Below the pieces are notes generated by a model. That model did not search any database. It worked only from the letters and a program-made list of their open reading frames with translations, and was not told the origin of the DNA. The position numbers and the translations under genes are program-made. From Mytilus californianus (Eukaryota), in the NCBI RefSeq assembly GCF_021869535.1, contig NW_026262604.1:19220001-19284000 (forward strand): a stretch of 64,000 nt of DNA, written 5' to 3'. This document shows positions 1-48,700 of the stretch, piece after piece; the first letter of the stretch is position 1; each line of letters starts with the position of its first letter.

Positions 1-732
1 GATCTCACATAATTTAATTTGTATTCTTATTGAGCTCTATCAATTGAAACATGACGTAGAAATTGACCCACCGTGAACTTATTTTCAATATTTGATTGCA
101 GAAAAAGTAAACCTGAGTCAAAAGGGCTCGAAGTACGATGTCCCAGAACATGGTAGCTAAACTGAAGTCAGCGTTGTTGATTTTTATTACTTTTTAAAAA
201 TGAAATGAAATGAATCAAGATTGGTGCTTGTGTCAAATTACATCAACAATTGTAATTTTGTTTTTTACTTTTTTGTCGACTTTTCATACATATTATATAA
301 ACCTAAAAAGACTAATTCCATCTATCAGTAAACTACGGCTTCTATCTTTTTTATATTAATATTTCTTGAGTTATTGATGTCTAAAAAGCTTTTACCCCAG
401 ACTGACAGTAAAATACTAAATAAAATGAAATGACAATGTTTCAATATGTATCTTTAATGTGACCAAATCGTCTCTGCGTTACTTTTTCGTGAGATTCATA
501 TTAAAAACCTGATTTATACATTTTATTTTTCTGTGCAAATCGTATTGGAACTATAAATGGCATTTATTAGTACATGGACATAACTCTTGGGCATTTAGAC
601 AAACCAAATTATCTGATAACATTTTAATCCATGTAATATTGGTTTGTTATAAAAGTTAACTCTGTCAATCTGATACAGTTTCAAATACCACAGTGCTTTA
701 GGAGAACAAGCTCCGTTTTCAGCCTTGATAAA

Positions 733-1869
733 ATGCGTTCAGTCTTTTTCTTTGCAATTTTGGCAATTTGTACAGTTTCCAGTTTTGAAAATTTAGCTAA
801 TAAGCATGTTGATGTATCTTCAGGACAAGCAGCACCAAACACGTATGACGATGGTTTATATCCAGAGCGGACTACAACATCAAACTCTGAATACGTGGTA
901 TCTTCAGAACAAACAGCAGCATACACGTATGACGATGGTTTTTATCCAGAGCGGACTTCAGCATCCAACTCCGACCACGTGGTATCATCAGAACAAACAG
1001 CAGCATACACGTATGACGATGGTTTATATCCAGAGCGGACTACAACATCAAACACTGACAACGTGGTATCTTCAGAACAAACAGCAGCATACACGTATGA
1101 CGATGGTTTATATCCAGAGCGGACATCAACATCCAACTCTGACCACGTGGTATCTTCAGGACAAACAGCAGCAAACACGTATGAAGATGGTTTGTATCCA
1201 GAGCGGACCATAACATCCATCTCTAACCACGCGGTATCTTCAGGACAAACAGCAGCATACACGTATGACAATGGTTTATATCCAAAGCGCACCATAACAT
1301 CCAACTCTGACCACGTGGTATCTTCAGGACAAACAGTAGCATACACGTATGACGATGGTTTACATGCAGAGCGGACAACAACTTCCAACTTTAACAACAG
1401 GGTATTTTCAAAGGGTTTCCTATTCTACGGTTATGACCACCATGTATATCCAGTAAGTTCTACACGCTCTAAGTATGAACACGGCGGTGTTTATCTAAAG
1501 AGGACAACAACACACAAGTACGCCAATGGTGTTTATCAAGATAAGATGTCAACATCAAAGTATAGCAATGATTTAAATCCAGAACATGTAGTCACATCCA
1601 ATGTTTACCATAGTGTGTACCCAAAGGGAGCGACATTATTCAACAATGGCAATGATGTAAATGCGATGAGGACAAACAAATCCCAACAGGATAATGATGT
1701 GTATCCAGATGGTACTACAACATATATCTATGACTATGAGCCGACTGAAGTTATACATCTTCAGGGCCAAAGTAGTAAGTGTTTGAATACAAGTCTTGTG
1801 AAAATCGTCATCGAATCTGGTCTTATCGTATCCATTTTGTTTTTGTATGAAAATATTTTCATTCTATAA
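733..1869 (+). CDS. Signal-peptide-bearing Tyr/Thr/Ser/Asp-rich tandem-repeat ORF (378 aa as a single exon; probably exon 733-1774 of a spliced gene)
   Basis: ATG at 733, preceded by an acceptor-like ttttcag ending at 722. N-terminus MRSVFFFAILAICTVSS is signal-peptide-like. About 7 x 28-aa repeats (SSEQTAAYTYDDGLYPERTTTSNSDHVV). A consensus donor GTAAGT lies at 1775 (phase 1). Read-through gives a hydrophobic tail (LVKIVIESGLIVSILFLYENIFIL) and stop at 1869. Confidence 0.8.
   Translation: MRSVFFFAILAICTVSSFENLANKHVDVSSGQAAPNTYDDGLYPERTTTSNSEYVVSSEQTAAYTYDDGFYPERTSASNSDHVVSSEQTAAYTYDDGLYPERTTTSNTDNVVSSEQTAAYTYDDGLYPERTSTSNSDHVVSSGQTAANTYEDGLYPERTITSISNHAVSSGQTAAYTYDNGLYPKRTITSNSDHVVSSGQTVAYTYDDGLHAERTTTSNFNNRVFSKGFLFYGYDHHVYPVSSTRSKYEHGGVYLKRTTTHKYANGVYQDKMSTSKYSNDLNPEHVVTSNVYHSVYPKGATLFNNGNDVNAMRTNKSQQDNDVYPDGTTTYIYDYEPTEVIHLQGQSSKCLNTSLVKIVIESGLIVSILFLYENIFIL
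814..1400 (+). repeat. Coding tandem repeat, 84-bp unit, about 7 copies
   Basis: gtatcttcag/gtatcatcag recurs at 814, 898, 982, 1066, 1150, 1234 and 1318. Confidence 0.95.
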
Positions 1870-2770
1870 ATTGTTTTATTTACAATAAATTGATACTGTA
1901 GAAATACAATAATTTTCTTTTAAGTGAATTAAGTCTAACAAAAGTTAATTAAAGGAGAATTAAGTAAATGCATTGATAAGGCCAGTTGTGTACTTATTTC
2001 AGTCACTAATTGTGACCAAAAAAAATGAAAATAGACATGATAGGTAGTCTGTTATTGACAATTTCCTAAATTAAATTTTGCAGATTTGACGGGTGGGTTT
2101 TATTGTTTTGTCACTGAGAATATATTTCAATACTTATTATTTTTTTTACATAATTGTTCAACCATTCATTGTTTAATACATTTTCAATTGGTAAGATATG
2201 AGATTGGGCCGTCAATACTTTTTTCTTTAAAATATTTTACCATTTAAGTACAGTGGGTACATATGCTCAGTGAAATAAAAGAACTTAAATTCTACCATCT
2301 GATGATTTTTTTGTTAAAATTTCAAAAGAAATATTTGTTTTTAAACTGAAATTTTACCCTTATTACAATGTGATTTGTCTGTGCTAGAAAAAGGGGACAT
2401 TTTTTTTTTTAAAACCAAAATATTCTGTTTATATTCTGAAATCGGATCAGTTCTATATTCTTAACGTTACATTTATTACAGTTTGAATGTATTTGATGAC
2501 ATTTGGATAAATATTTATCAATTGATACAAGATTGACATAAGCGTTATTTTTAACACATGTTCAAACTACTTACATTTTTGTCCTTCCTGTCTTTAAATT
2601 CACGATCAGTGTACTAAAAAAAATAATACCAATTTACCTCAACTAATGCGCAAATGCTCCAGAAGAAAATGTTTATTGTCTGTCGTAAATGAGTTACTCC
2701 TTTGTTTTCAGAGATTCAAAGTTTCTTATTTTTATATAAAACTATACAGATATAACATTGATGTTTTTAG

Positions 2771-3229
2771 AGCGAACCACAAGAAACAAGTCAACTGCTC
2801 TTGGTGTAAATAATAAACGAACCAAAAGATTTATGTCTGGTTATGGCGTCTATCCAGTGCAAGCCACAACATCAATATTTGACGATAGTGTGTTACAAGA
2901 ATGGACCACAAGATACAATTATGACCATAGTGTATACCCCAAGGGGACCAGAACCTCCAAATACGGTTCTGCTGTATATCCAGAGAATACCAAAAGATAC
3001 AACTTTGACCATAGTATGTACCCCAAGGGGACCAGATCCTCCAAGTATGGTTATGGTGTATATCCAGAGCGGACCACAAGATACAACTATAACCATAGTG
3101 TATACCCCAAGGGGACCAGAATCTCTAAGTATGGGTATGATGTATATCCAGATGGGACCACAGAACATTTGTATGAAAATGATGTTACAACAGAGCCAGC
3201 TATAAGTGTAGACCCTCAGGAGAAAACAC
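2771..3229 (+). CDS. Second repeat exon (YPKGT/YPERT Tyr-rich 14/28-aa units), phase 1-1
   Basis: Acceptor tttttag at 2770 and donor GTGAGT at 3230. Open frame with motifs shared with the 733 ORF (VYPERTT, VYPKG, VYPDGTT). Phase matches the 1775 donor. Confidence 0.7.
2914..3160 (+). repeat. Coding tandem repeat, 84-bp unit x3 (two 42-bp subunits)
   Basis: The tacaa(t/c)t.t.accatagt.tgta.cccaaggggaccaga unit starts at 2914, 2998 and 3082. Confidence 0.9.
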
Positions 3230-3883
3230 GTGAGTATTTACAGAAAAGGTATCTCACTAAAGTACCTATCGTCAATATGTGTTATTAGTAAATATCCTAT
3301 TTTGCATGCCTATTTGTTGTTTATGTATAGCTCCTTACTGTCATTTATTAAAAAAAAAATAATAAAGATTGTTTAAACTAATCTTTATGCTTTGGAAATA
3401 TTTTGACATTGTGAAAAGAGAGAATAATAGCTAAGCTTTTATTTCGATCTTAAGTATTAAAGATTATTAGTGTTGTATTTGCAATTTTGCCAAAATTAAT
3501 GTTATTATAGTTATATATTTGATGTATTCCATTTGTAATAGCTGGTAGATCAATTATGATCAATTCACCGCAATATTTTTGTATTGTTTGGTCCTTTGTG
3601 AGTTGTTCAAAATAATTTATTAGCTATACCTGTGCACACCCCGCTTTTTGTTTTTCATGAAGTTGGTCTTGCTCAGTTTTAGTTTTCTATGTTGTGTTTT
3701 ATAGACTGTTGTTTGTATTTTGGATTATCTCTGTCAGTTTATCTTTGACTGAAGTGTTTGAATAACCCTTTGACTTTTTTCCTGCCTCTATTTTACAGTA
3801 AAGGTCATATTTTGACGTTTGTTAAACAAATGAATGGATATCAATTATATAACAAACTTTTTTTATGCAAACAACGAATTATA

Positions 3884-4380
3884 GTCATTTCGTACCCTAA
3901 CCATTTCGTACCTCCCATTTCGTACCCTTGCAAACCCCATTTCGTACCCTGACCATATCTTACCTTGACCATTTCGTACCTCATGGAATATATACATGTA
4001 TACCATTTCGTACCTCATGGAATATTTACATGTATACTATTTCCTCATGGAAGTTTATATGTATGCCAATTCGTACCTCATGTAAGATTTATATATATTT
4101 GTCATTCTGTATCTCATGGAAGATTTATATGTTTTTGATTTTTTGGTAAAAACTGTCTCATTGATGTGCGCCATTTTGTACCTTATGGAAGAGTTATATG
4201 TATACCATTTTGTACCTCATGGAAGATTTGTATGTATGACATTTCGTACCTCATGAAAGATTTGTATGTATGTATACCATTTTGTACCTCATGGAAGATT
4301 TGTATGTATGTATCCCATTTCGTACCTCATGGACGATTTGTATGTATGTATACCATTTTGTATACCAGTTTAGTATGACT
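3884..4380. repeat. Minisatellite array built on CCATTTCGTACC (about 38-bp units in its distal part)
   Basis: Repeated ccatt(t)cgtacctcatggaagatttgtatgtatgtata. The same core recurs inverted (gggtacgaaatgg) at about 5376-5442. Confidence 0.9.
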
Positions 4381-4721
4381 TTTTATTAAAATTTTATTGC
4401 AAACATAGGTCAAAAAGACATTAAAATTACACCTAAGGGATTCCCCTTTACACGAAAGAATAGTTTCTACCTGTCTTGGTTTTTATCCTTCTTTATATCT
4501 TCTCAGGGAAGATGACACTGTGAATTTAGATGATCGATAAATATAACGGGAAATGGTCCTCCGTTATTATTTCTTGTATTAGTTATCAATCTTCCGACCG
4601 AGGCAGACATGAATTACCCTCCGCGGGAGTCCCGATTGATCTCGAGCCGCGTTTCCAATACTTTTTAATATACAATTCCTTGGTTAGATATAAGGATACA
4701 AAATAAACGAACTTGTAATTT

Positions 4722-4905
4722 AGATTAGACCGTTGGTTTTCCTGTTTGAATTATTTTACTCTAGTCATGTTTATAGCTTGCTGTTCGGTGTGAGCCAATG
4801 CTCCGCGATGAAGGCCGCACTTTGACCTATAACTGTTAACTTTTTATACATGGTGACTTGGATGGAGAGTTTTCACATTGGCACTGATACCACATCTTCA
4901 ATATT
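4722..4905 (+). mobile_element. Interspersed repeat (3' end of a retroelement or SINE-like family)
   Basis: Near-identical to 25757-25940 (attagaccgttggttttc...gctgttcggtgtgagccaa...cattgg.act.ata.cacatctt). Partial copies at about 21690-21810, 26335-26445 and 37520-37640. Confidence 0.7.
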
Positions 4906-5865
4906 TTCATTGTAATTTTTAAATTCAAAAGGCCATAGCCAGTTCTTTGATTGGTCACATAAGGTGCAAATTCTAATGAAAACATTCTTGGGTGAATATC
5001 AGCTTGTGTCCCTTTTCACTGCATTTCCTGACAAAAACAACTGTTAATAACTATAAAAACAGTTGCAGATAATCCTTTCTTTGATGATTAATTAATCTCT
5101 TATTTTAAGAGTTGAAAAATTAATTAAGGATAAATCCTGCTAACAAACAACGTGTAATTAAAACTATTAAAGTTTCCAAGTGCTGCTTAATCAAACCAAT
5201 CATCGGTCTTTATAACATTTCTACGGCTGGATGCATTGTATTTATGTTATATTTACAAAAATTCAAATCATCTCAAAATGTTTTATATCTTAAAAAAATG
5301 TGAACTTTTACAAATAGATGATACGAAATAGTAAAGATGTATTTTGTAAAAAATGGTAGATGCATGTGGCCAATAGGGTACGAAATGGTTTTTATCGTGG
5401 GTACGAAATGGTAAATTTTAGGTACGAAATGGCAGAGGTACGTAGTCTAAAATCATGCGAAACATGTAAAAACATTAAAAAGGAATACAAAAATGTTGTA
5501 TGAAAAGAAAATACAAAACCAAGTAAAAACCCGTGAGAAAAAAAAATTGTTATTAAAAAGAAATGCAATTTAAGGTAGCACAATACAAAGATTTTATACA
5601 TGTACCTCCAACTCCCCATTTTTAAAATGCTGTAACTTTCTTTATAATGCTTGAAAATTTATAAAAGTGGTATTTATGGATAGCTAACAGATTATTCTTT
5701 CAAATTAATGCAATGTTAGTATTATACAACAATTATGTAATTAATTATAATTTTAACTGTGTCTACAAAATTTTACAAGAAATTTCCACTTTCAATTGAA
5801 ATTAGCTTCTTCATGGATACCCCGAGAGGGCTGATTTTATAATATGTTGTTCCTAGAGCCATTAT

Positions 5866-6023
5866 CTACAAAAGGGTGTCTCAGATTTTGGACAGAATGT
5901 ATAGATCAAATTTTACACCTAATCAATTAATCTCTACTTTTACTTGGTAAGGATGTTTACACTAATTACAGATTTATGAGAGAATGGAATACGATAGCGA
6001 TAATTTGAGACACCCTTTTGTAG
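5866..6023. repeat. Perfect 18-bp inverted repeat pair around a 122-bp spacer (possible small MITE)
   Basis: ctacaaaagggtgtctca (5866-5883) and tgagacacccttttgtag (6006-6023). Confidence 0.7.
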
Positions 6024-6297
6024 CTCCTGCTGTGTTGATTAACATAACGTTAAAATTTCTTGTGTAGTTATAGAGATGTCAGAGCTAAATTCATTCAAGT
6101 GAACTGACCAAGATTTTGCCATTAATTGCATAATAATTGATTACATAATGATTGCATAATAAAAATATTGCATTCATTTAAAAGATTAATCTTTTATCTA
6201 TCTATATATACCTCTTTTATTAATTTGTATGCAGTCATAAGAAAGTAACATCATTTTAAAGGTTGGAGATTGGAAGTAAAAAAATCTTTGTATTGTG

Positions 6298-6400
6298 CTA
6301 CCTTAAATGAGTTTTAAGCTGAGATTTAAAACAATCTAGAGACTTGCATTGACTCAAACTAGAGATTGTTCCAAAGAAATGCCGCTGACCAATCAAAATA
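6298..6400 (-). mobile_element. Possible L2/CR1-type LINE 3'-end remnant
   Basis: Minus-strand translation ends ...SLSQCKSLDCFKSQLKTHLR*, resembling the S-L-x-x-F-K-x-x-L-K-T-H-L C-terminus of L2/CR1 ORF2. Confidence 0.35.
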
Positions 6401-6919
6401 TCTTTCGCTGTACGTCTTCGTCTTGTAGTTGTGTAGAGCCTGAACGGAGAGATCGATGTGGCACGTGTGTCTTGACTAGTTCCCGATTGTACGCAGGACT
6501 GATGCCATTCAAAGTACAGTGCACATAAGTATGTTAAATTATGGTCAGTACTGAACGGGTTACCAATGCAAGTTGACAAGTATCGGTGTAATATGTTCAT
6601 ATTTCCTTGTCTTGTTGATTACCGAACTGTTGTATTTTGTACTTATCTTGTTGATATTCCTGTTATCAAGTCTGGATCTTACTATAGAGTGTAATAGTGT
6701 CTCACATATATGCAGCTGTTGTTATAAAGCTGCGAATGAGTCCACTATTACTGATGTGAAATGACAACATTTGACTTTGGCAGATACTTGCTGTTCCATT
6801 GTTTTATCATAATATACTCCTAGGAGTTTTACACAGGATACGCACAGTATTGCCGACTTTGATGTGGATATTTGTTACACTTGCGTTCAAATGTTTCGGT
6901 GTGAATATGATACGTTCGG

Positions 6920-7140
6920 TTTTATCTTGATTAAGTTTTAACGTATTTTTTGACATCCATGAACAAACATCGGAAAGACACAGTTCGAGTTTTGAAAAGT
7001 AATTCTCCAGGTGTCTGCCGGCTTTATGACCATGTATACTTGTGTATCTTCCATTTTATCTTGATTAAGTTTAACATATTTTTTGACATCCATGAACTAA
7101 TATCGGAAAGACGCAGTTCGAATTTTGAAAAGTTATTCTT
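6920..7140. repeat. Direct duplication of about 88 bp (period 134 bp)
   Basis: ttttatcttgattaagt...gacatccatgaac.aa.atcggaaagac.cagttcga.ttttgaaaagt.attct at 6920 and 7054. Confidence 0.85.
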
Positions 7141-7169
7141 AAGTTGATTATTTCAGCTTTCCAATTGTA

Positions 7170-7380
7170 AACAATCCATTTCTATGCAGCAACATTCTAG
7201 CAGCGCCTGCATATTGAGTAAATATCTCCCAGTCGATACGAAATTCCAGATGTCTTATCATGATTATTTGATGGAGAGTAGCTGCTCACATGGAAGCTAT
7301 TAAACTAAGAGTTGTAAGTAGTGAAGTTGAAATCATCTCTTCGAAAATTTTACGGACGGCACCACGGGTTGACCGTTATA
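7170..7380 (+). mobile_element. Penelope-like RT C-terminal fragment (decayed)
   Basis: Translates as PFLCSNI.AAPAY...SQ.IR and VKLKSSLRKFYGRH, matching the C-terminal part of the RT seen at 31850-32150. Confidence 0.6.
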
Positions 7381-7513
7381 AACATAAGAAAAATACAAAA
7401 ACAAGAAGCTAACTTGGACAAAAACAAAAGAACACCAACATTTCCAAAATAACCATTACTCTTTAAAATAGATATTATATACATTTTGTTTTTGTATTAC
7501 TTTCTTATTTTAG

Positions 7514-9210
7514 AACTTGGAAGACAGGTGCCATGTGAAATTATCAATATAACCGATACTGTGTCGCCTAATGCCAGGGGTAGAGTACACCATGTTGAAA
7601 AGTCCAGTCGTATGTTTTGGATATGGTTTGATGACTCAAATTATATTTCAGTTGCTCTCAGCAAAAATTGTACACACCTCATGCCAGAACCATTCAGATA
7701 TGTCAGTTCGAGGGACTTACAAGAATTGTTGGAAGACTGCCGAAACGGAACAGTTATCAAAAGGTTATTATGCAACCATTCCGTGACATACAATATCAGT
7801 TTAGTCAATGCCGTTATACCCTACTTTTCCGATGTGCGTATCTTCTTTGCTGATGGAATTAACAACTGCACAGAACTTTTCAACAAATTTATTGAATCAA
7901 AAAAAAGCATTTTATCAAATGCACACGTCAATGATTTTCTAACTAATAGTTCAAACTGCTGGAAATATGCTTTCTTTACTAACCAAATTATCATTGGCGT
8001 ACAATTGACCGAAATAAGAAATGGTAGCGGACGTATGATATCAGGATACATGTATATGAATATTAAATCACTTTTACAGAGACGCATTTGGTTCATATTG
8101 AAACACAAATCATGTAGGGAACTATTTTATCAATACGCTTATTGGAATGTGAAAATGTTTGATGATAGAGCTATTCTCAGTATTGATAATATAAATACTT
8201 TTTCTCATGAAAATAATTGTTTTGATGTTCGCTTTCCATGCCCTTTTCCGTTCTATGATATGTATGCAACTTTACCAGATTCTACAATATCATATGTAAA
8301 AATTGTAATTGCAGTTGAAATAACAATAGTAAATAGCGTTTTTCTATCTATATTTCTGCAAAAAGAGAACCGAACACCTGTTATCATTCTTCTGTCCGTT
8401 TTGGCTGTATCTGATACTACTACCGTGCTGTTAATGACTATTCCATTGTTTACTCTCCATGAAGTACATATGAACTTCAATGAAAGATTGGCTCATCGTT
8501 TTGTTGACTTTCCAGAATGTGTAATTTATACTTTTCTTGACGATTTACAACATTTATTCCATTTAACATCAGTCTTCATAACAGTACTTTTGTGTCTCCA
8601 GAAAACTGTAGCTCTGCTTTTGCCAATGTGGAGCAAACGATGTTTGAATAGCAGAGTCAGTATTATATTTTCTTTTTTTGTCTTTTTCATAAGTATTTGC
8701 ATGAGTTCACCAAAACTTGTGGAAAATCTTATCAGCATTAAGAATTTCAACGGCAGATGTTGTTCAACTTTTTCTACTGATACATTCAGTTACCATTTCA
8801 CTATAACTAACGCTTGTTACCTTGTATCTTGTTTGGTAGTGGCTATATGTACTGTTTATATAATATGCAAATTAACCTGCCTGAGAAGAAATCTCCCGTG
8901 GACCGATAGTCCTGTTGTTCAGAGAAGAAACCGTATCTCAACAATTACGGTTGTGACCATTTGTATCATATTTTTGCTATCTGAGTCGGCGCTTATTGTC
9001 GTATCTTTCACGACTATGCTTTATCTTTTTGACCCATCGTACTTGCAGATATTTTATGTTGCGAAATCTACATTGACAAAATATACGGACATTAGTCTTA
9101 TGTTTGGGTTCTCTCTGAACTTCATAGTTTACATTGTAATGAGTAAGCAGATACGTGATAAATTAGTTATTGGCGTTATAAGGATTGCAAGATGCTGTAA
9201 ATGTTGGTGA
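7514..9210 (+). CDS. Class A (rhodopsin-like) peptide-receptor-type GPCR exon with a long Cys- and N-glycosylation-rich ectodomain
   Basis: 574-aa open frame with seven hydrophobic segments: TM2 LLSVLAVSDT, TM3 end LCLQKTVALLLP (DRY position), TM7 SLNFIVYIVMSKQIR, C-terminal CCKCW*. No ATG or signal peptide. A polypyrimidine acceptor tttcttattttag at 7513 (phase 1) implies upstream exons. Confidence 0.88.
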
Positions 9211-9212
9211 AG

Positions 9213-33700: not shown

Positions 33701-36700
33701 CAAACACTGTTTAAAAATCCTCACCTTCAGATATAGTAATAACATTATAAATATGAGCAACGGTTTTACCTAAAAGATATTTTCCCCTTTGTCTTAATAA
33801 TATCTGTCTTTTAGGTAAGGTTTTGGATGTTATCTTATTTATTACAAAATAAATAAAGAGTGACATTTAGATTAAATATATTCATTTCAAAAAACAAGTT
33901 ACCTTTCTGAACTCAAGTGACTAGATAATGACTTAGGAATGCTGTTTTATAAAATATGCAAACAATTGAAAAACGTGAAAAATTGGAGTACTTTTGTAAT
34001 TCAGGGACCAAAACAATCGAAATCACCTTTTGTCACTCAGGATAACCGCGAAGTTTTTAAAAGTTTACAAATTAAAATACCGATTTAAGTTAAGCCGGAA
34101 CATTGGAAGACAAAATAATTCATTAGCTGATTTCAATGACGTATTTGGAAGTTGTGGGATTGATTCCCTTCTTTAATAAACTTATATTTTGCGATTGTTT
34201 TTACTAACCATTTTTGTCATTTTTCAGATCTGTTTTGTTCAGAAATACTTTACCCTTGGTAATGAAACTAGATACGATTTTGGTTGTACATATCAGGAGG
34301 TAATCATAATGTTCACAAAATAATTCGTAAAGTTTAATACGAGACATTTTCTTATGATCAATGATGATATGACGCATTGTTACAATGGGTAGTATAAAAC
34401 TGACAATTTGAATAACTATTTGACAATTTTAACGAAAAACCCTGAATATATAGCCAAATAAAAATATTAGCTCTTAAACATGTTAAAAGGATGTAATTGA
34501 TATTTAAAATTTCAAATGTAAAATTATTAGATAAGCAAACAAATTTTAATACCTGAATGTCTTTAAATTTACCTTCACATTTCAACATGTTAAGTAGTAG
34601 TCCGCCTAAGAATCAGGCAGATACCAAATAATTTTAGGAACATGAATTTGGTCAATCTGATGCATTATTTGTATATAAACAGTTATTCTCAACTACTTTC
34701 AGCTGACATAGTTAAAAAAGTGGTATATATTATAATTTGTCTATTTTAGCATGTCAGATTGTGCCATAATGCCTTTAATAATGTACTACAAAAGTACTGA
34801 AATATATATTTTTCATTGAAGAAATACTTGAGAAAACAAATGGGAAACCTTAATATCTTTAAAAAATTAAGAAAAAAAAGTGTCATATGTTATTAAAACA
34901 ATAACTGTTTCTGAGTGTTTTTGTCTCATTAGTACACATATTGTCCTTACAAAAAGACTAGACAATGCTAAAATATAGGTTAGAGTTATCTTCCATTACC
35001 CACAATGCAATAGATTTCAACAATGGCAGCCCCCATGGGCTCCTGCTCAATTGGAGTTTTTGCCTCAACAAAGTGTGGAATATCATCAATGCACCCTTCA
35101 CATACAACTTTATCAAGATAGAAGGACTGCCAGAGGAATATCCAAGCTCATTTGTTGAAAGTTGGATTGAATGCAGGTGTAACAGGAGTAGCAGACGTCA
35201 CATACGAGGGGGAACTTATTTCAAAAAGAGTGGGTTTGTTCACTGTTGAGAGCGACTTCAGTGTTTGTCCATATCATAGAGATTTCCTTGGAATAAACTG
35301 GAGACAAAAGGCCTTGTGCCGATATCCAATTCATGAGGGAAAGGCCAAGCCTTATCGGAGCTTTACAACGGCCATGAGCAGTCAAATGTTAGCCGACTTT
35401 TGTGTATTTGTGCCCATTGGCTCTGGTAAGTACAATGTACTTTATTTTGTTTGTATTCCAATTCATTAATTATATTGTCAAATATATACATAAAATTGAG
35501 AATGGAAATGGGGAATGGGTCAAAGAGACAACAACCCGACCATAGAACAGACAACAGCATAAGGTCACCAACAGGTCTTCAATGCAGCGAGAAATTCCCG
35601 CACCCGGAGGCGTCCTTCAGCTGGCCCCTAAACAATTATATATACTAGTTCAGTGATAATGAACGCCATACTAAACTCCAAATTGTACACAAGAAACTAA
35701 AATTAAAAATAATACAAGACTAACAAAGGCTAGAGGCTCCTGACTTGGGACAAGCGCAAAAATGCGGCGGGGTTAAACATGTTTATGAGATCTCAACCCT
35801 CCCCCTATACCTCTAGCCAATGTAGAAAAGTAAACGCATAACAATACGCACATTAAAATTCAGTTCAAGAGAAGTCCGAGTCTGATGTCAGAAGATGTAA
35901 CCAAAGAAAATAAACAAAATGACAATAATACATAAATAACAACAGACTACATGTTTGTTTATAACTGATGCATTGAGTTTGTTTGGTAACAAACGATTGA
36001 AATCTTTAAACAGGTTCAGTATGTTGACATTTTCAAGGACATTTCTCCCTAAGTAACTGATAATATACATATATGTGTATTTTAAAACAAAGTGCACATT
36101 TTTGTATTGACAAATTACCCCTACATGTACCTTAACATTCTCTTTTTTGTTTGTATTAACATATGCCCTACATGAACTTTATTTTTGAAATCTGCCATGT
36201 CAAGTTGATATATGATAAAGTTGTGCATGCAGGCTCTGTAGAGTCATTTAAGACCGCCCTACAAGAACACCCATAACAATGGGGCTCTTCTCCACTGTGT
36301 ATAAAAGCCATAAGCCCATAACAGGATTCTACACATACCAATACAGATACAGATACCCTCCCCCCTTTTTCCACCACAAACTGAACCCCCAAAAAATAAG
36401 TTTTACATTATATAACCACAGTTTTTTTTATAGGTGATGATCAAGTATTTTGAAAGGGGGACATAGCAAGTTAATGTTTTCACTTTTGATTGATACTTTT
36501 AAAAGTTTATGCATAAACATGATGAAGTTTATCATTTACTTTCAAATTTTCAAAAGTTCAGAATGTATCACCTCCTCTAAATATCCAAAATACATCTAAA
36601 TATATACTTATATAATATGAATGTTTCTTAAATTTAAGTTTTATATGTTTGTAAATATTGTTTATGCTTCTCTTGCAAATGTCTTGGTTTTGGGATTTTA

Positions 36701-39700
36701 TACTAATAAAATAATTTAATTTGTCTTAGACAATACATGATTTTTTAAATAAAGTATTTATTATTATAAGCTACATAATGGAACCCCTCTCCCCCAACTT
36801 AAATGCTTCCTATCAAAATTGATTTTGTCCCCATATTTAAGCTGAATATATAATCCATTATGACATAGACATATATATATATATATATTCTTTATATGAA
36901 TTTTATGCATTCTTTTTTCTTTTTCTTTCAAGGAATATGCAGATAATGTAATGGAGAATACTTGAAAGCATATACATCATGTACAGAAAAAAAGGTAACA
37001 TAGTTTTATTACATATACCAATATAAAACAAAATGTAGGTATAACTGCAAACGGTTTGGGTTTTCTTATACGGTATCTCTACTACCCGAGGGTTATGATT
37101 CTTTTTCTACACTTCATGTGAGGTGGATGATAATTCTGGTCTATGTAAATAAATTGCTAACGGAACCACCATTAAAATTGCATTGAATTTATCATTTATC
37201 TTTATACGACCGCAAAAAATGTTTTGGGATCGTATAATGGTATGATGTCGTCGTCGTCCGAAGACATATTGGTTTCCGGACAAAAACTTTAGTTTAAGTG
37301 AATGGATCTCTATGAAATTTTTTAAGAAGGTCCAATACCACAAAAGGAAGGTTGGGATTTATTGAACCATGTGAGGGAGAATAAAAAAAAAAGATGTTTA
37401 TAATGACAAAAACTCTCAATCAGAAAATTAAGTAGCTTCAGGTCTGTCATTTTATTTTTGCTACCTATATACAAACATGATAGACTAGGCAGTTAGTCTT
37501 CTCAATTAAATAGTTTCATAATTTTTATGTCAGGGCCTTTCATAACAGACTATATGATATGGGGTTGGTTGAAGGCCGTACAGTTGCCTGTAGTGGTTTC
37601 TATCTAATTCATTTAAAATTTGTTTGATATTTGTCTCATTAACAATTACATGTACCCGTATACCATATTTCATTAGTTTTTGTATGTACATGTATGTATA
37701 TGAAATACAATATAAAGACGCAGATGTATGCCGGCATATTGTTTATGACATAGTATACAATAGACATGATAGAATACCAACATCTGCACCTTGAAATTTG
37801 CAGTAAAATATAATTTGCCATAATATTAAATGTTAGTAAGAATTGATTGCTTTTTTTCATATGATTTATTGTCTTCACTGTAATTTGTAAATTGTATCAA
37901 TCAAAAATTAAATATAATCAATGATAAGCATTGTATTTTTTATGTAGGATATCAATGGCAATGGCATGGATATAGAGATTGATGATCCAAATGAAGACAA
38001 ACCTAATGTTAATAAATTTGTAAGTATAGTTTAGTGTGGCACACATACATATATCATGAATATTGTTCAGTATGGTGAAGTAGTAGGCAGGTGGGTGAGG
38101 GGAAACAGGGTAGATAATTTCTACAATTAAAGAAGAGCCAAATGATGTTACATGTGTATGAAGTTATAAAAGGTTGGTAAAAAATATATACAAAAGGAAT
38201 ATTCAAACTCATAAATTGAAAACAAACATATCATGAGGGAAAGATTTTTTTTTTGGAAGAGGGGGAAATTTTTTTTCTCAATTCAGATTTCAGAAATTAA
38301 CAAATAAAATTTCTTCCAATATTTTTTTCTTGTTGGCAAAATAAAGGGTGAGGGGGAGGGGGTAACAAATTTCTTTTTTTGGAGAGGAGGGGGGTCAATA
38401 CGCAACAGCATAGTGTATTGCTTAAAAGCAAAAAAAGGGGGAGTGGGTTAAATTCGCAACAGCATAGTGTATTGCACAAAAACAAAATATTGAATATATA
38501 AATATAAATTCAAATCATATAACCAATTCTAAGTTCTTTGATTAAAGTTATTCTGTGTCAGAAACCTATTATTGTAAAATATTTAATTACAATCCAAATT
38601 CAGACATGTATTAAGCATCGCCAGTAAAACTGCATTTGTGACAGTCAAATCGACAATTGACGGTGGCAACTCTTCAACTACAGTACTGTTATTCCTTCAG
38701 TGTGCTTATCAGTCTATATGATTGTGACCTCATTTTTTTGTTCGTTTTCCAATGTTAAGTTTAGTTTTTATACGACCGCAAAAAAATTTTCCGGTCGTAT
38801 ATTTGAATGACGTTCGCGTCGTCGTCGACCAAAGACACATTGGTTTTCGCACTCTAACTTGAGTTTAAGTAAATGGATCTCTATGAAATTTTACCATAAG
38901 GTTCAATACCACAAAAGGAAGGTTGGGATTGATTTTGGGGGTTATGGTACCAACAGTTAAGGAATGAGGGGCCAAGAATAAGCATTTGTATAACTTCCAG
39001 ACATAACTTGTGTGTTAGTGTATGGATCTCGCTGACATTGTACCACAAGGTTCCATATCACAAAGGGAATACTGGGATTGATATTGGGGGAAATTGCCCA
39101 AAACGTTTTGGAATTTGGGGCCAAAAAGGGGCCAAAAAACAAACATTTTTCTAGTTTCCAGACAATAAATTGTGTTCAAGTGTACGGATCTCTCTGAAAT
39201 TGTACTGCAAGGTACCATACCTCCACATTTTAGGAATAAGGGAAAAAAAAAGGGGCAACAAACAAGCATTTTTCTAGTTTTATGAAAATTACTTGTGTGT
39301 AAGTGTATGGATCTTTTTGCAATTGTACTACAAGGTTCCATATCACAAAGGAAAAACTGGAATTGAGTTTGGGGGTAATTGCCCGAAACGTTTTGGAATT
39401 TGGGGCCAAAAAGGGGCCAAAAAACAAGCATTTTTCTAGTTTCCAAACAATAACTTGTGTTTAAGTGTACGGATCTCTCTGAAATTGTACTGCAAGGTAC
39501 CATACCCCAAAGGGAAGGTTGGGATTGAGTTTTGGGGGGATGAATCATAAGGGGGCTCAGAAAAATTGAGGGGGGATATTTTTTTCCTTTTTTTTCTATA
39601 AAATTTTTCATTTTAAATTGGTTATTTCTGATTTATAAATAAAAGCAAAATAATAATGATATGATTTAAATAGGTAAATTAAAAATGTTTCAGTTCTTAG

Positions 39701-42700
39701 ACAACATTCATTCGGTGTCAGAAACCTATGCTGTGTCAAATATTTAATCAAAATCCAAATTCAGTGCTGTATCAAGCTTGAATGTTGTGTCCATACATGC
39801 CCCAACTGTTCAGGGATCGACCTCTGCGGTCGTATCAAGCTGCGCCCAGCGGAGCATTTCGTTTTAGTTTATGTAAGGAATGAAACAGGTGAGAAATTTT
39901 AGTAGTTGCACTCTTGTTTTTTAGGACATGTAGGAGTAGATTTGTACAAGAGAAATATATTGTTGTTACAAAAGTCAAGTTTAAGTCAACAAACTTGCTT
40001 ATATTGTAGTCAAAATTAGTGGCTACAACAGATGATGAAGATGAGCATTGTAACTATACACTTCGCACGAGAAAAACAAATTCATCTACCTTTGATAAGG
40101 TAAGTCAGTCACTGTAATCATAACACATTTAAGAACAATATAACCAAATAAAAAAGGTTGAAAACTTCTTGCAGAAGAATTGTATCCATCCAGATAACTT
40201 CATATTCATAGAAATTAATATTATCAGGCATATAACATTAGAAAATGAATGCGCTTATTTATCTGTATATCTTGAAATAATTCTCGCTTAAATTTAAAAA
40301 AAAATATCTTCTCTCTTACAAACGATGTGTTATTTGGTCCAAGACAAACAGAAAGAACCCACATGAGAAGCAGCATTCAACAGTTGAACACAAGATAAAA
40401 AAATACTATTTCAATTATTTAAAAAAATAAATGTGGATAGTGTCCACATGTGGACATAGATGATGCCCCCGCTTGAATATCATATAGTTATAAAGGGACA
40501 TAACTGAAGAACGGTAAAAAAGACGCTACCCAAATTTGAACTTGATCTGAATTTTGTGGTAATAAGCATTGTGTGGAAGTCTCATAACATTTGGTTGAGG
40601 CTAACTTAAGTAGAGAACAGAAACTAAAAATTCAGCAATTTTTCTATTTGTAAACACGCATAACTCTAGAACGGTTGTGTATAAGTTTTATAACATTTGG
40701 TTGAGACAAACTAAAGTTAGAGAACGGAAATGAAAAATTCAGCAATTTTTATGTTTATAAAGGGACATAACTCAAGAATGGTAAAAGTGTCGCCACCGAA
40801 TTTCGTACTTAATCTGTATTATGTAGTAATAAGCATTGTGTATAAGTTTCAAAATATTTGGTTGAGGCAAACTAAAGTTGGAAAACGGAAACCAAAAATT
40901 TGTACTTGATCTTAGTTTTGTGGTAATGAATATTGTGTATAGGTTTCATAATGTTTGGTTGGGGCAAACTTAAGTTATAGAATGGAAACTAAAAATTTTG
41001 CAATCTTTTGATTTATAAGGGGGCATAACTTAATAATGGTTAAAGTGACACTACCCAAATTCAACTTGATCTGTGTTTTATCCGTGGAAGTCAAAATTAA
41101 ACATTGCATTGTATAAAGCATTGATTGTAGTTGATTCAACTATAATCATGGACAAAGGAAGATAACTCCAATTTTAAAAATTACTTGATATTTAGAAGAA
41201 AATAAAATTTTTGCAATGTTTCCATTTATAAAGGGGCATAACTCTAGAACAGTTTAAGTGACGCCACCAAAATTCAAACTTGATCTGTGTTTTGTGGTAA
41301 TAAGTATTGTATATAAGTTTCATAACATTTGGTTGAGGCAAACTTAAGTTAGAGAACGGAAACTAAAAATTTTGCAATTTTTCCATTTTTAAGGGGTATA
41401 ACTCTAGAACGGTTTAAGTGACGCCAACAAAATTCAGACTTGATCTGTGTTTTGTGGTAATTAGCATTGTGTATTTATAAGTTTCATAACATTTGGTTGA
41501 GGCAAACTTAAGTAAGAGAACGGAAACCAATTTTGGGACGTACGTACGTGCGTACGTACAGACGGACAAGGGTAAAACTTATTGCCACACAGCTACGGCG
41601 TGGGCATTAAAAGCTCTATAACAACATGAACAATATGACCTCTCATATAAAACAAAAAGTAAGACCAGATGCTCCTGACTAGTCAGCATTACTTGATCCA
41701 TGTATGGTACCTGTCATGTAAGGCAGCACCAAACACAACTTTTATTGCAAAACTATGGTTATCACAATACTATAATAAATACATGTACATGCAGCATAAG
41801 CTTTGACAAACATCTTACAACATTGTATAAAAAAGTACAAATGTAATATAATGAGAGTCACTTCATCTGTGTCCTGTTTGTATTTTAAAGTTTCTGTTTC
41901 ACTTCAATGAAGTTGAAAAAGGAAGATTTCAGCATGCTGTCTCCTGAAAAAAAAAGAATGTTGGGATTGATTTTGGGGGTAATGGCCCTAACTTTTTCGG
42001 AAAAAGGGACCAACATCAAGTCAATACTTTTCTAATACTTCTATATATGAATTGCTTATTTATAGATCAATTTAATTGGGTTTAAATCAAAACTTTATTC
42101 TTCTTTGGGGTTTTTATCAAAAATTGAATTCTTGGGATTCTTTGATAAGCCAAATGTAACTGTATATTCAGAATCTTAAGTATGGGCCCTGTTTCTAAAT
42201 TGGTCCACATTAAGGCCCTCAAGGGTCTAAATAAAACTTTGTTTGATTTCATAAAAAATCAATTATTGGGGTTCTTTGATATGCCTATTATTCTTACCTC
42301 ATATTTATATTTTTATACACTGCCAAAAAATTTTGGAGTCGTATATTGGTATCACTTTGCCATCTGCAATGTCAGAAGACACCTAGTTTCCGGACAATAA
42401 CTTTAGTTTAAGTGAATGGATCTCTATGAAATTAACCACAAAAGGAAGGTTGGGAATGATTTCGGGGGTTATGTTCCCAACTGTTTAGGAATTTAGGGCC
42501 TAAAAAGGGGTCCAAATAAGTATTTTTATACGCCCGTTTATGGGACATATTATGGTTTGCTGTTGTCCGTCTGTCCGTCCGTCCGTCGTCAACATGTCGG
42601 ACTTTAATTCAAAAACGCTTTAACCAATATGCATGAAACTTTGGTGAAGTGTTTATATCTATTGACGTGAGCTCCCTTTCGTTTTTTATAAATTTGGGAT

Positions 42701-45700
42701 TTACGTTTCAGAGTTTTGGGGTTTTATTCATTAAAAAAGGGGGGATTTTCCAGTTTTGGGACAATAACCCAAAAACAATTTCACCAATTTGCATGAAACT
42801 TTTGTGAATGTTTTATATCTATTGACGTGAGCTCCCTTTTGTTTTTTTATAAATTTCTGATTTACCGTTTCCGAGTTTTGGGGTTTTATATAGGGATGTC
42901 AACGAGTACTCGAGTACTCGAGTATCGCTAGTTAGTACCGAGTATCGAATACCAAAACGATACTCGACTAATCAGTTTCCTGTTAGAATGTTGTTGCTTT
43001 CTTAAGCTTAAACAAAAATATTTTTATTGAGAGCGCCTCCTAGGAAATAAAATATTAATCAATATTAAAATATGTCTCGAATGTGTGCGTTTAATTGTCA
43101 TTTTAAATTCCTCCGAACAGAGGTAGGCTATGAACAAGAGCACCTTTCCAATGCTTACACTTTTAGCTAATCTTATAGTCATTCCCCCTCCCCCACCTCT
43201 GTACCGTCAGAGCAAATATTTTCATCAGCAGGAATGTTAAATACGTAACAAAGTTGAGAAATAACCTCGTCGCAGAAAAAGCTGACAAGATAATATTTCT
43301 AAATAAGAACAAATTCGTTGCACCCTGTGTTGACCCTCAGAAAATGATTAAAGGCATCAATAAGTTCTAATCATTACCCCTTTGCTGACCATTAATGTGT
43401 TTTTTTACGATTCCCAAATACTGTTGTTTGAGTAATCATTTTTCTAAAGATGTGTTTTAACATGATTAATTAATTGATTAGATTATTGCCAATTTACTTA
43501 ATTGGTACAAGTAGTAAATGAGCTATTAATTATGGTATAAAATTCCTGGAACAATTATCTAGTCCTAGGTAATATTGTTGAGGGTTTTACGTTAAGAAAA
43601 CGACAAACAATACATAAAATAGGTATGATTTTGTGTTTCCATTTTGTAGATGTTTTTCCGAGCGAGTACTTGAGTATCACTCGGTAAATCCAACGAGTAC
43701 TCGATTAGTAAATCTTTATCGAGTTGACATCCCTAGTTTTATTCATTAAAATAGGGGGGGGGATTTTCCAGTTTTCTGACAATAACTCAAAAACAATTTC
43801 ACCAATTTGCAAGAAACTTTGACGAATTGTTCATTTCTATCGACATGAACTCCCTTTTGATTTTTATAAATTTTAGACTATACGTTTCCGATTTATGGGG
43901 TTTTATTCATTACAAAAATAGGGATTTTCCAGTTTTCGGACAATAACTCAAATGTTATGAAACTTTGGTAAATTGTTTATATCTATTTTTGTAAGCTCCC
44001 TTTTTATATTTATAAATTTTTGAATTTAGGTTTCCGAGTTATAAGATTTTATTTGTTTATAGTCTTGACAACAGATTTACTTAGCATTGCGCAACAGCAC
44101 AGTGTTTTGCACAACAGCAAGAAATCTTTAATTAAATATCAATTCAATTCATATAACCAATTTCAAGTTCTTCGACTACATTTATTCAGAAACCTATAAT
44201 ATGTCAAATATCTTATTACAATCCAAATTCAGACCTGTATCAAGCTTGAATATTGTGTCCATTTTTGCCCCAACTGTTCAGGGTTGGACCTCTGCGGGCG
44301 TATCCAGCTGCGCTCAGCGAAGCAGTTTATCCTAGTTTCCAGACAATAACTTGTGTGTAAATGTATGGATGTTTCTGAATTTGTACCATAAGGTTCCATA
44401 CCAAAAAAGGAAGGTTGGGATCGATTTTGGTGGTTATGGCCTTTTCTGTTTAGGAATTAGGGGCCAAAAACAATATTTGTATAAATTGTTTATTTCTTGA
44501 CCAATTTCAATAGGGTTTTATTCTTGAATTTGTGGGGTTCTTTAATATGCTGAATGTAACCGTGTATAACGTTTTTGGATTTTGGGCCCTGTTTTTAAAG
44601 TGGTCCACATTGAGATCCAAAGGGTCCAAAACTAAACTTTGTTTGATTTCATTAAAAATTGAATTATTAGCGTTCTTTGATATACGAATCTATCCGTGTA
44701 TTTAGATGTTTGATATATTGTCCTGTTTTCAAACTGGGATACATTAAGGTCCGAAGGGTCCAAAATTAAACTTAGTTTGATTTTAACAAAAAATATTCTT
44801 GATTTCTTGGGGTTCTTTGATATGCTGAATCTATACATGTATTTAGATTTTTGATTATGGGCCCAGTTTTCAAGTTGGTCCAAATTTGGGTCCAAAATTA
44901 AACTTTGTGTGATATCAACAAAAATTGAATTATTGGGGTTCTTTGCTATGACGAATCTATTCGTGTATATAGATTTTTAATTTTTGGTCCCGTTTTCAAA
45001 TTGGTCTTCATTAAGATCCAAAGGGTACAAAATTAAACTTAGTTTGATTTTAACAAAAATTTAATTCTTTGGGTTCTTTGATTTGCTGAATCTAAACATG
45101 TATTTAAATTTTTGATTATGGGCCCAGTTTTCAAGTTGGTCCAAATCGGGGTCCAAAATAAAACTTTGTTTGATTTCAACAAAAATTTAATTATTGTGGT
45201 TCTTTGATATGCTGAATCTAACTGTGTTTGGATTTTGGGCCCTGTTGTCAAATTAGTCAACAGGTCAAAAGGGTCCAAAATTACACTTTTCTTTTATTAA
45301 AAGATAAACTTTGTTTGATTTCTGACATCAAAAATATAATTAATGTTAGTCTTTTATTTGATATGCTGAATTCTAACCATGTATATTAAGAAATTGTTGA
45401 ACATCCTTACATATGATATTGTTTAGTTCTTTTTGAATGACAATTGTTACCTGCATGATTTTCTATTTATAGAATTTATACACATATTCACAAGACAGCG
45501 AGGGGCAAGTTAGTACAGTGTGCAGCAGTCAAGATTCAAGTTGGAGCCAAGGGGACGAAGTATTGCCTCTTAAAGAAATCCAAATTGCTGATATCAACAA
45601 GGCTATTTATGTTCTAGGTCATGGTTGTATCAGTCCACTTAGATCAAAGCTGAACACAAAAATAGATGAAGCAAAAAACCGAACCATCCGATACTACAAA

Positions 45701-48700
45701 AGAAAGGCTGAGGAAACATCTGAAGCTCTATATAATGCTATTGCACCTAAACAAGGAACTAAACTAAGGAGAATTTCTGATCAGGTTCCAGTAACGAAAG
45801 GTGATGATGACCTTCTTTATGTTGTTTTCCAGATGTGTAAAAGTATAAAGGATGCAGATGTAAAGTGTCAACTTTTGTCTCTTGTTGTGAACCAGTTTTC
45901 AAAGACTGATTTGTTGACATGGATTCCTGAGATCACAAAATATCAAATAGATAAAGCCAGAAAACATGCATTTGTTAATGGTCCTGGCTCATGTATACAA
46001 TCTTCAAAGACACAACAACATAGAAAGAGAATAAACTATGTCATATTACAGCATGCTGTAGAATTCTTCAGTGACCCATCTTTCAAACAAATATCATCTT
46101 ACACTACCCATGACCTAAAATTAGACTCGGGAGATATTCTTGTTATCCCAGATGTTGTTAGAACAGTCATCAATTCAAACTTGATTAAACTGTATAAACT
46201 CTACTGTGCCGACAATGATTTCAATCCTCTAAGTGACTCAACACTGTATCAAGTTTTGAATGCATGTGAAGCATCCAAAAGGAAGTGCCTTAAAGGTTTA
46301 GACAACATTGCTGTAGATGGCACCACAGCATTTGACAACATTTTGTCCCTAATTTCCAAGCTGAACAAAACAGAGGACTGGAAGAGTACATTTAAGAGCA
46401 AACTTTTAAATAGTAGACTGTACTTAAAAACAGATTACAAACTGCATATAAAAAGAGAAGATGAATGTGCCTTCCATTGCCTGCAGTATTCATTAAGTGA
46501 TCCAAAAGTTGGTGCCCTTAGTGTTGGATGTGAACATGCATCAAAAGGCATGCGACAGATGTCTGCTGCTTGGAGATATTGTTGAAGAAGTTCGGTTGGC
46601 CATTTTATCCAGCTGTCCAGAGGATCAAGAAGCTTTCCTCCAAGACCTGGAAATATCAACAAGGCAGATTGAGGACTGGAGATCTCACATCTTGAGAACA
46701 ATCAACCAAGATGATGTCAGGTTTGATCTTCTGAACAGCATACAAGGCAATGAAGAAATTATTATCATAGATTGGGCAGTGAAATACCTTCCACAGATGT
46801 TTAGGGAAAGAATGAAAGATTTCTTTGGTCAAAAAGGGATGCACTGGCATGTGTGTGTTGCCATTTTTAAAGATGAAGACAACAGTTTAAAGGTAAGAGT
46901 AATATTATTTAAATGATAATCCTATTTACCATTATAATGAACCTAAATGTCATCAAACATGGCAGCCATTATTACTGAAAATTTAAAATATATATATGCA
47001 ACAAAAATCTTGAAAAACTCTGTAAACAAAAATATTACATAACAAAAATTATTAATGACCAAACAGCTAAAAGTGGCCCATTGATGAGGAAAAACTACAA
47101 GTAATGCAAAAAAATTAAAAATCTTTAAAAAAAAACAATTGTTACTGAATTTCATGGAAATAATTCACCAAGCTTGGCCACCACTATTCCTTAAAGGTGT
47201 AATACCACCATTGATTTTCCCTATTAGTCTTTGTTAAATTTGCACTTTTCAAAAAATTGTGCAGAATTTATCTTTGTTTCAAATAAAGAAATACTTGGCA
47301 TGAATAAAGTTTTATCATGTCCAGTACTATAGAAAAAATTTCACATAACATTTCATTGCATATAAGAAAATAACCATCACTGGAAGTTAACCAATCAAAT
47401 TTTCCCCCTTTTTAAACCTGTGTACTAGCTTTAGTAACCATGTAACCTCAAGTTTCCAAAATGTTCTATAGAAACCCCAAATAAAAAAATAATGGTGATT
47501 TGAAATACCCAAGATATATGTTTAAGACCCAGAAATGTTTTACTGCAATGAAATGTAAGATCAATTACCTACAACTGTCAAATTCAAGTGAATATTTTTT
47601 CCGACCTATTTTCGTATGCAACCGGATGTGACGTACTATGATTTGGTGGTATTACACCTAAACAAACATTTTTTTCCAAAATGATTGGACAGTAACATGA
47701 TGGCTGCATGGAACATAGTTAGGGAACCAACAAACCCTATGGGAAATTTTTTTAAGTACACATGTCTGCTTTCACCAATCTGAACCAAACTTGATAAGAA
47801 TGATATTTGAAAATTCAATAAGTTTGTCAGTTACTTCGTTATCAAGCATGGTTAGGTCTGCAATTTCCCTTGAGTACTCTGGATTCCTAAAACATTGGCA
47901 TTGGTGACCAATAGATAAATAAATCCATTCCCCATTTCCATTCTCAATTTTATTTATATTAAATGAGAAGACCTTATTTTGCGTGTTGCTTCTCTTTTTT
48001 CCACAATAAATTAATTATCAACCATCTGTGTCCTAACGGTACCATGCACAGTCGCATTTGTCATTCTCTTTTATGATTATTCAGTTTCGGTTATTTTGAG
48101 AGAAAAATGGAAATAAGGCGTCCAGATATTGTTTCCGTCATTGGAAAGATTTTTAAGTCATAGACAAGACTTCCGTTATATTTAGGACTGTGAAAACAAC
48201 AAATAGTTTTGATAGATACTTGGGAACAGGACAATTATTTTTGCGTTACATATTCTATAAATAGAGTGTATTTGCTATTTACTGTTGGTGACACAGTGGA
48301 AAGTAAACTTTGAAATGATAGTAAATAGGAAATACACTTTATTTATAGTATATGTATGTTCATAGTAACAGAAGAATTGAATAATAGAAAACAAAAAATT
48401 ACGGATTTTGGAAAAAGGAGGATGAAAGAAAAAAATTGTAATGTCAGCCTACAGAAGTTTTACATACTTTAAACCACGGTCTAAATTACAGCTATTTCGC
48501 AAGTGTGTTTTAGTTTTATTTATTTGTAGAAAGTCATATTAAACACCATCCATACTTTGACGGTATACAATAAGAACTGATTTTTATTTTAGCACAAGAC
48601 CTTTACTTATATAATGGACCATGTGAAGCAGAACTTCTTCGGTGTTTTATCCCTGTTGGAGCACACACTATCTTCTATTAAGAAACCGTTACCACAAATC

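Follow-up and report, generated by a model that had tools for sequence, protein, structure and literature searches.

A three-exon Mytilus gene very probably encoding a 1065-residue rhodopsin-type receptor with a tyrosine-rich repeat array and a three-module ectodomain

The window analyzed in this work is a 64,000-nucleotide (nt) stretch of the Mytilus californianus genome (assembly GCF_021869535.1, contig NW_026262604.1, positions 19,220,001-19,284,000 of the forward strand), and all coordinates given below are window positions on that strand unless another sequence is named. Three exons, at 733-1774, 2771-3229 and 7514-9210, very probably join into one gene for a rhodopsin-type G protein-coupled receptor (GPCR) of 1065 amino acids. 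The predicted protein begins with a signal peptide, which is followed by a 479-residue Cys-free repeat array (acidic in exon 1 and basic in exon 2), a Cys-containing and putatively N-glycosylated domain of about 250 residues built from three modules, and a divergent seven-transmembrane (7TM) core. We put the probability of the whole reading, in which a single Mytilus gene specifies a receptor with a repeat array, a folded domain and a divergent 7TM core that would have a sensing role, at roughly 70%. The gene model as such is well supported, mostly by comparison with the sequences of relatives.

Exon 1 (1042 nt) starts with the ATG at 733, runs from phase 0 to phase 1 and ends at a GTAAGT donor at 1775, and the signal peptide (MRSVFFFAILAICTVSSF) is encoded at approximately 733-798. 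Intron 1 (1775-2770, 996 nt) is followed by exon 2 (459 nt, phase 1-1), which lies between a ttttag acceptor and a GTGAGT donor at 3230. Intron 2 (3230-7513, 4284 nt) leads to exon 3, a 1697-nt open frame behind a ttattttag acceptor that encodes the ectodomain at 7514-8280 (255 residues) and the 7TM part at 8281-9210, with the TGA stop codon at 9208-9210; a gap of N begins just past the stop, at 9214. Scripted joining of the exons (1042 + 459 + 1697) gave 3198 nt encoding 1065 residues with the sole stop codon at the end, and the junctions in the joined protein read ...QGQS-K-RTTRN... and ...QEKT-Q-LGRQVPC.... The exon boundaries, phase-1 sites, joined reading frame and junction residues given in an earlier reading of this DNA (hereafter the original prediction) were reproduced exactly on re-reading and scripted translation.

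The chance of phase matching by itself is about 1 in 9. All 1065 codons are open in DNA of 31% GC content, where a random sequence would be expected to hold approximately 8% stop codons, and the 565-codon frame of exon 3, taken together with the conserved gene structure described below, is far beyond chance. Exon 3 itself does not encode a signal peptide. Because many family members carry a signal peptide directly before the same ectodomain, this domain is placed outside the cell and exon 3 needs an upstream signal-peptide exon. The search of the forward strand at 1-7513 found no rival first exon, and the open reading frame (ORF) at 733 was the sole signal-peptide-like ATG ORF there with a phase-1 GTRAG donor. 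A homology search with exon 1 at E <= 1e-3, read for proteins of 191-607 amino acids, turned up no stand-alone relative.

The same gene structure recurs among the relatives. Named homologues of the GPCR exon were found in Mytilus only (M. coruscus, M. edulis, M. galloprovincialis and M. trossulus), and an exhaustive HMMER scan of 1.8 billion cluster representatives returned 146 matches at E <= 1e-3, with 22 at E <= 1e-30, so that the family is apparently small, fast-evolving and restricted to Mytilus. A phase-1 intron lies at the same position in five paralogues or orthologues from four species; there the split codon of the acceptor and six further codons precede the first conserved Cys. With slashes setting off the split codon and this Cys, the window reads Q/LGRQVP/C, the M. 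trossulus RefSeq model P0005 reads S/EQLQEH/C behind a 79-nt signal-peptide exon (resolved by tblastn and by eye), P0003 of M. galloprovincialis reads K/YTNRMK/C behind a 748-nt exon with signal peptide and repeats, and the M. edulis-type sequences P0013/P0155 read G/AESKMI/C. The intron position in P0013 came from Logan contigs, which were also considered as transcripts and rejected; they are genomic, since an intron and an acceptor precede the ORF. Two M. coruscus copies, A and B, have the acceptor at the same place and in the same phase as the window. The upstream partner exon always bears a signal peptide. As to the check proposed with the original prediction, whether mollusc homologues of the 7TM part carry similar N-termini, the Mytilus homologues carry signal-peptide exons, some of them with Tyr-rich repeats, on this same acceptor. 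The invariant plan of the family is a signal-peptide exon, a phase-1 intron, and one large exon for the ectodomain and the 7TM core.

The closest parallel was found in M. coruscus. Positions 2-9212 are colinear with two tandem copies on one contig, at L005 19638-28233 (copy A) and 35703-48707 (copy B), with 78-93% nucleotide identity; therefore the unit duplicates as a whole, and the degree of identity indicates that the window derives from a Mytilus genome akin to the M. coruscus assembly and not identical with it. The contig holds a third copy as well (L001, with the protein model P0006). Copies A and B, whose signal peptide is identical to that of the window, have junctions that read ...QDQS-R-RPTTNK... 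and ...EKT-K-(T/L)G(T/R)QM..., and the orthologous second introns measure 2.1 and 6.1 kb. Homologues of exon 2 in M. coruscus are 291, 288, 246 and 324 nt long, compared to 459 nt in the window, and all are in frame with phase 1-1. The models P0154 and P0006 have the same three exon types and the same junctions as the window, and P0001 consists of exons of 235, 324 and 1559 nt, all in phase 1, that lead from a homologous signal peptide to a C-terminal KCW, an ending common to the window, P0001, P0002 and P0013. Across the family, members with zero, one or two repeat exons occur.

These M. coruscus models, all annotated as 'unnamed protein product', are in part misassembled. P0154 (1252 amino acids; CACVKT020008880.1, L005 10001-47930) is a chimera of an unrelated N-terminus, copy A interrupted within its ectodomain, and copy B, which a frameshift in TM1 cuts short; its second half is 83% identical to the ectodomain of the window. 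P0006 (911 amino acids) begins within the exon-2-type exon of an upstream copy, both P0154 and P0006 are cut by frameshifts within the 7TM part, and P0001 has 705 amino acids. A search for long orthologues with the repeat region of P0006 returned P0154 and P0001 only.

Sequencing runs were mapped over 1640-7635. Run X1 comes from a relative (about 92% identity, 87 Mb, patchy coverage), and its status as RNA was guessed. Positions 74-165 of one 165-nt X1 contig lay on 3137-3228 and positions 1-72 on 7514-7585, joining exon 2 to exon 3. The match in exon 2 ends at 3228 because relatives have A instead of C at 3229, which gives a codon for K, not Q. This contig has 5 and 8 mismatches, close to the 5 and 7 of M. 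coruscus copy A. Contigs from X1 covered exon 2 at 2883-2984 and 3137-3228. Splicing of exon 2 to exon 3 was therefore seen once, in a relative. Together with the intron position and phase in five relatives, the junctions in M. coruscus and the lack of a rival signal-peptide exon, the contig joining 3228 to 7514 upholds the three-exon class A model of 1065 residues that the original prediction had put forward. X1 contigs also lay within intron 1 at 2040-2439, at a depth of 6-8, and before 2342 there is a loose end of 255 nt. Their source may be RNA that was not spliced, a repeat of low copy number or, in the relative, an additional exon.

The rhodopsin-type identity of the 7TM part is supported by profile and by predicted structure. 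Pfam 7tm_1 matched exon 3 at E 9e-6 (25.7 bits, below the gathering score of 30.5); 18 of the 28 relatives matched 7tm_1 at E <= 0.01, and four matched the nematode family Srw. The AlphaFold2 model of exon 3, based on a 28-sequence alignment, reached a pLDDT of 89.4 and a pTM of 0.84, and showed seven helices (exon 3 residues 256-280, 288-317, 334-368, 379-407, 421-454, 466-505 and 507-542) followed by helix 8 (544-563). Seven hydrophobic segments were found in the joined protein, with the N-terminus outside. When the model was compared to the Protein Data Bank (PDB) with Foldseek, the best 50 of at least 500 matches (E <= 0.001) were all class A receptors, among them NMUR2, SSTR2, NTSR1, opioid receptors and CCR5, with E values from 2e-8 and target TM-scores of 0.7-0.78, and the family profile matched the PrRP receptor (E 2.7e-7) and rhodopsin (E 8e-7) in the PDB.

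At the level of individual motifs, N1.50 (N273) and D2.50 (D300) are conserved in at least 90% of the family, the family consensus includes a disulfide pair between TM3 and the second extracellular loop (YPxC atop TM3 and GxCC in the loop hairpin), Y5.58, N7.49 and Y7.53 are kept, and MSKQIR in helix 8 aligns with MNKQFR of rhodopsin. Three other class A motifs were not found in their canonical form. LCLQKT aligns with IAVDRY/LAIERY, so that QKT replaces DRY, and the QK pair (3.49-3.50) is conserved in the family. In the place of CWxP, IFLLSESAL aligns with AFLICWLPY of rhodopsin and has Ser 6.47, Glu 6.48 and no Pro 6.50; the Glu at the toggle position 6.48 (IFxxSE) is conserved across the family. 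NFIVY aligns with NPVIY, with Phe replacing Pro 7.50. The protein ends a few residues past helix 8 (CCKCW) and has almost no C-terminal tail. In summary, the core is class A by fold and profile, with several micro-switches that are non-canonical and conserved as such. An adhesion (class B2) GPCR was also considered and rejected: there is no GAIN/GPS and no 7tm_2, the sole Pfam match in exon 3 is 7tm_1, and Pfam found no GAIN/GPS or 7tm family in exons 1 and 2.

The ectodomain encoded at 7514-8280 has conserved Cys residues and eight N-x-S/T sites by our count, in agreement with the original description of the GPCR exon as one without a signal peptide that carries about 250 residues of ectodomain with many such sites. 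Modeled alone with AlphaFold2 (exon 3 residues 1-255), it was predicted to form an alpha/beta domain with a pLDDT of 89.2 and a pTM of 0.84. Alignment slices compared with hhalign resolved three modules of about 75 residues (module 2 versus 3, E 1.5e-5; module 1 versus 2, E 2e-4), each with the pattern strand, Cys, helix, loop, helix, Cys, as in NCTELFNKFIES...VNDFLTNSSNC. No Pfam family matched the ectodomain, the best Foldseek match in the PDB had an E value of 0.11, and VIA-align gave no Z >= 2 among 48,161 chains. In the ESM Atlas, the shape search reached a TM-score of at most 0.29 and the feature search values of at most 0.87, with LRR and F-box look-alikes only. The modeled domain is thus without an assignable fold after searches of the PDB and the ESM Atlas.

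The repeat array occupies residues 23-501 (479 residues) and contains 10.9% Tyr, 12.9% Thr and 10.9% Ser, and no Cys. Tandem Repeats Finder detected an 84-nt unit, corresponding to 28 amino acids, in 6.9 copies at 814-1390 (89% matches) and in 3.1 copies at 2903-3162. The first block consists of seven acidic units with the consensus VSSGQTAA(Y/N)TYDDGLYPERTTTSNSDHV, followed by degenerate Tyr-rich units, and exon 2 encodes basic Tyr-rich 28-residue units (YNYDHSVYPKGTRTSKYGYGVYPERTTR); the net charge is about -19 for the exon 1 block and about +8 for the exon 2 block. Of the 52 Tyr residues in positions 1-501, 23 are flanked, within five positions, by two or more acidic residues and no more than one basic residue. 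A comparison of 28 units from three genes gave VSS.QT...TYDDG as the best-kept core. The number of 84-nt units is 5.8, 8.6 and approximately 18 in the M. coruscus copies. The 14-residue unit of P0003 (VSSEQTTTYIDDGG) equals the first half of the 28-residue unit of the window; since the two genes share this unit despite only about 41-44% identity of their receptor parts, the repeat N-terminus is an old trait of the subfamily. It is in this one subfamily that the segment linking the signal peptide to the ectodomain has grown, via tandem duplication of 14- or 28-residue units, to between about 6 and 18 copies. The original prediction had described the array as a stalk, and this part of it did not stand: because the array precedes the folded domain (signal peptide, 479 residues of repeats, about 250 residues of folded domain, 7TM), the repeats are a distal N-terminal appendage and not a stalk.

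The array may not be present in every product of the gene. Exon 2 could be skipped because every junction is in phase 1, exon 1 repeats could be skipped as well, by way of internal sites, and cleavage of a furin type at R-T-K-R (residues 364-367, encoded at 2818-2829, at the start of exon 2) could shed the exon 1 block, leaving a shorter receptor and a soluble Tyr-rich polypeptide. Besides the common phase, the occurrence of relatives with zero, one or two repeat exons and the RNKR that both M. coruscus copies have in this position speak for such isoforms or processing, and shedding by a convertase is conceivable from the motif. On the other hand, exon 2 is rich in K and R and could yield RxKR by chance, and the motif is not found in P0006 or P0001. 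We regard this alternative as possible, if somewhat unlikely.

The folded domain and the 7TM pocket of the receptor would form its sensing and transducing unit. The array, by analogy with the sulfated N-termini of chemokine receptors, would extend from it as an appendage, probably disordered and O-glycosylated and possibly sulfated on Tyr, and would capture or concentrate an external ligand or a matrix partner, and the receptor may act as a lineage-specific environmental or chemosensory sensor.

Several points weigh against this reading. Its functional part is drawn from composition and analogy only, and the altered micro-switches (QKT, NFIVY and Glu 6.48) mean that coupling to G proteins is not assured. 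The public gene models are predictions and not independent transcripts, and run X1 is RNA by guess and derives from a relative. The original prediction had named spliced reads across both junctions as its check; that across 3229/7514 was obtained in the single X1 contig, and the junction 1774/2771 had no spanning read in the mapped runs and is supported by comparison only. Run X7, true RNA-seq data under the species label of the window (tissue unknown), was read to approximately 6%; in that portion, no read fell on exon 1, 2 or 3 and the only matches were to intronic repeats. In M. coruscus, copies A and B each carry 1-nt indels, both in exon 1 and in the GPCR exon; the copies are either pseudogenes or affected by errors of long-read assembly. 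Finally, the ratio of nonsynonymous to synonymous substitution (dN/dS, NG86 method) relative to M. coruscus was 0.5-0.8, measured against frameshifted partner copies and with exon 2 ranges misaligned by differences in repeat number, so that the estimate carries little information; constraint is therefore weak, or some copies are decaying.

Several of these points would also fit an architecture that is real in the family and a window copy that is unexpressed or becoming a pseudogene, like its M. coruscus counterparts. The lack of X7 reads on the exons, the frameshifts in both M. coruscus copies, the dN/dS values and the unstable number of repeat copies are all consistent with it. Against it, the window copy is intact throughout: its 1065 codons remain open at a GC content where random stop codons would be frequent, its splice sites are intact and its signal peptide is the same as in the M. 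coruscus copies. Moreover, the indels in those copies may be assembly errors, a spliced, transcript-like contig was found in a relative, and the X7 result concerns a small fraction of one run from one unknown tissue. We therefore consider a silent or decaying copy unlikely. The exon 1 repeats are 92% identical to copy B, the ectodomain 91%, the 7TM part 87% and the introns 85-89%. The 5' flank (2-732), at 96.7%, is closer to copy B than the exons (87-92%) or introns are, which could reflect a conserved promoter or 5' untranslated region, or gene conversion.

A separation into two genes would make exons 1 and 2 a secreted Tyr-rich repeat protein of the byssus, foot or shell-matrix type, terminated by read-through or polyadenylation, and would give the GPCR exon a first exon that was not seen. 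Repeats rich in Tyr, Lys, Gly and Pro resemble mussel adhesive proteins, which counts for this alternative, as does the lack of reads across 1774/2771. Reading through 1774 leads to an in-frame stop at 1867-1869 with an AATAAA near 1886, and reading through 3229 leads to a stop at 3286-3288 with an AATAAA near 3361. However, the three exon types are linked in phase at four other loci, where they have been duplicated together, the X1 contig links exon 2 with exon 3, and in relatives that lack repeats a signal-peptide exon is nonetheless spliced to this acceptor. Given also that exon 1 has no stand-alone homologue among proteins of 191-607 amino acids and no competing signal-peptide exon with a phase-1 donor in 1-7513, two genes are very improbable. 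It is equally far-fetched that the product is a contact receptor, whose sulfated or 3,4-dihydroxyphenylalanine (DOPA)-modified charged repeat blocks would bind the substratum, biofilm or byssal matrix and maybe be shed at RTKR, with the three-module ectodomain, of a fold not seen before, relaying the contact to a 7TM core with Glu 6.48; if true, mussels would have a novel means of linking surface chemistry to G-protein signaling, for example in settlement or byssus deployment.

The one-gene receptor resembles several known systems in part. Lineage-specific class A GPCR expansions have been described in bivalves and in other Lophotrochozoa; those of bivalves lie in tandem, and a chemosensory role has been proposed for them (PMC11886862). 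The present family is likewise rhodopsin-type, genus-restricted and fast-evolving, with tandem duplicates and most of its coding sequence in one large exon, and by these features it probably belongs to such an expansion. In contrast, that study covers the 7TM repertoire, uses the word 'N-terminal' once, and includes neither the 250-residue three-module ectodomain nor the repeat N-terminus (PMC11886862). Adhesion GPCRs with mucin-like Ser/Thr stalks share a very long, Ser/Thr-rich, repeat-bearing extracellular region on a 7TM core; they differ from our receptor, which has a class A core with no GAIN/GPS or 7tm_2 and in which the repeats are distal and N-terminal, not between adhesion domains and the membrane. 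Peptide and chemokine receptors of class A (NMUR2, NTSR1, SSTR2, opioid receptors, CCR5 and the PrRP receptor) are the best structural or profile matches of the 7TM core. Chemokine receptors capture their ligands via acidic, Tyr-rich, sulfated N-termini. The N-termini of the peptide and chemokine receptors are 30-50 residues long compared to approximately 730 here, identity is 13-20%, and the Mytilus core has QKT for DRY, NFIVY for NPxxY, SExL for CWxP, and practically no C-terminal tail. The same architecture and junctions are found in P0154, P0006 and P0001, of which P0154 is colinear with the window at the DNA level. Literature searches found no published description of an architecture with repeat array, ectodomain and class A 7TM core, and it is present in public databases only as these unnamed, partly chimeric or truncated M. 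coruscus models, which the present analysis corrects.

Class A GPCRs usually have short N-termini or known ligand-binding modules such as LRR or LDLa. In the predicted receptor, about 730 residues lie outside the cell and are of two unfamiliar kinds, a repeat array and a confidently modeled domain without a structural match, and both have been kept across paralogues that have diverged to approximately 45-55% identity. The phase-1 modularity of the exons lets a receptor family gain and resize extracellular appendages. The receptor is a candidate for ligand capture or surface sensing in an animal of importance to biofouling and aquaculture, whose settlement cues are poorly understood.

Two further observations concern the introns and the remainder of the window. 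Intron 2 is packed with high-copy repeats, with a word depth of 1e4-1e6 in DNA runs, and contains 34-38-nt satellites at 3886-4362. Its very high-copy portions at 3640-3839, 4640-5039 and 7040-7439 reach a word depth of 1e5-1e6 in DNA runs and appear among the transcripts of X7 too; the counterparts of intron 2 in M. coruscus carry instead a 21-nt minisatellite, in 20 and 67 copies. Elsewhere in the window, the ORFs at 45518-46916 and 50228-51218 fit a mobile element and are unrelated to the GPCR gene.

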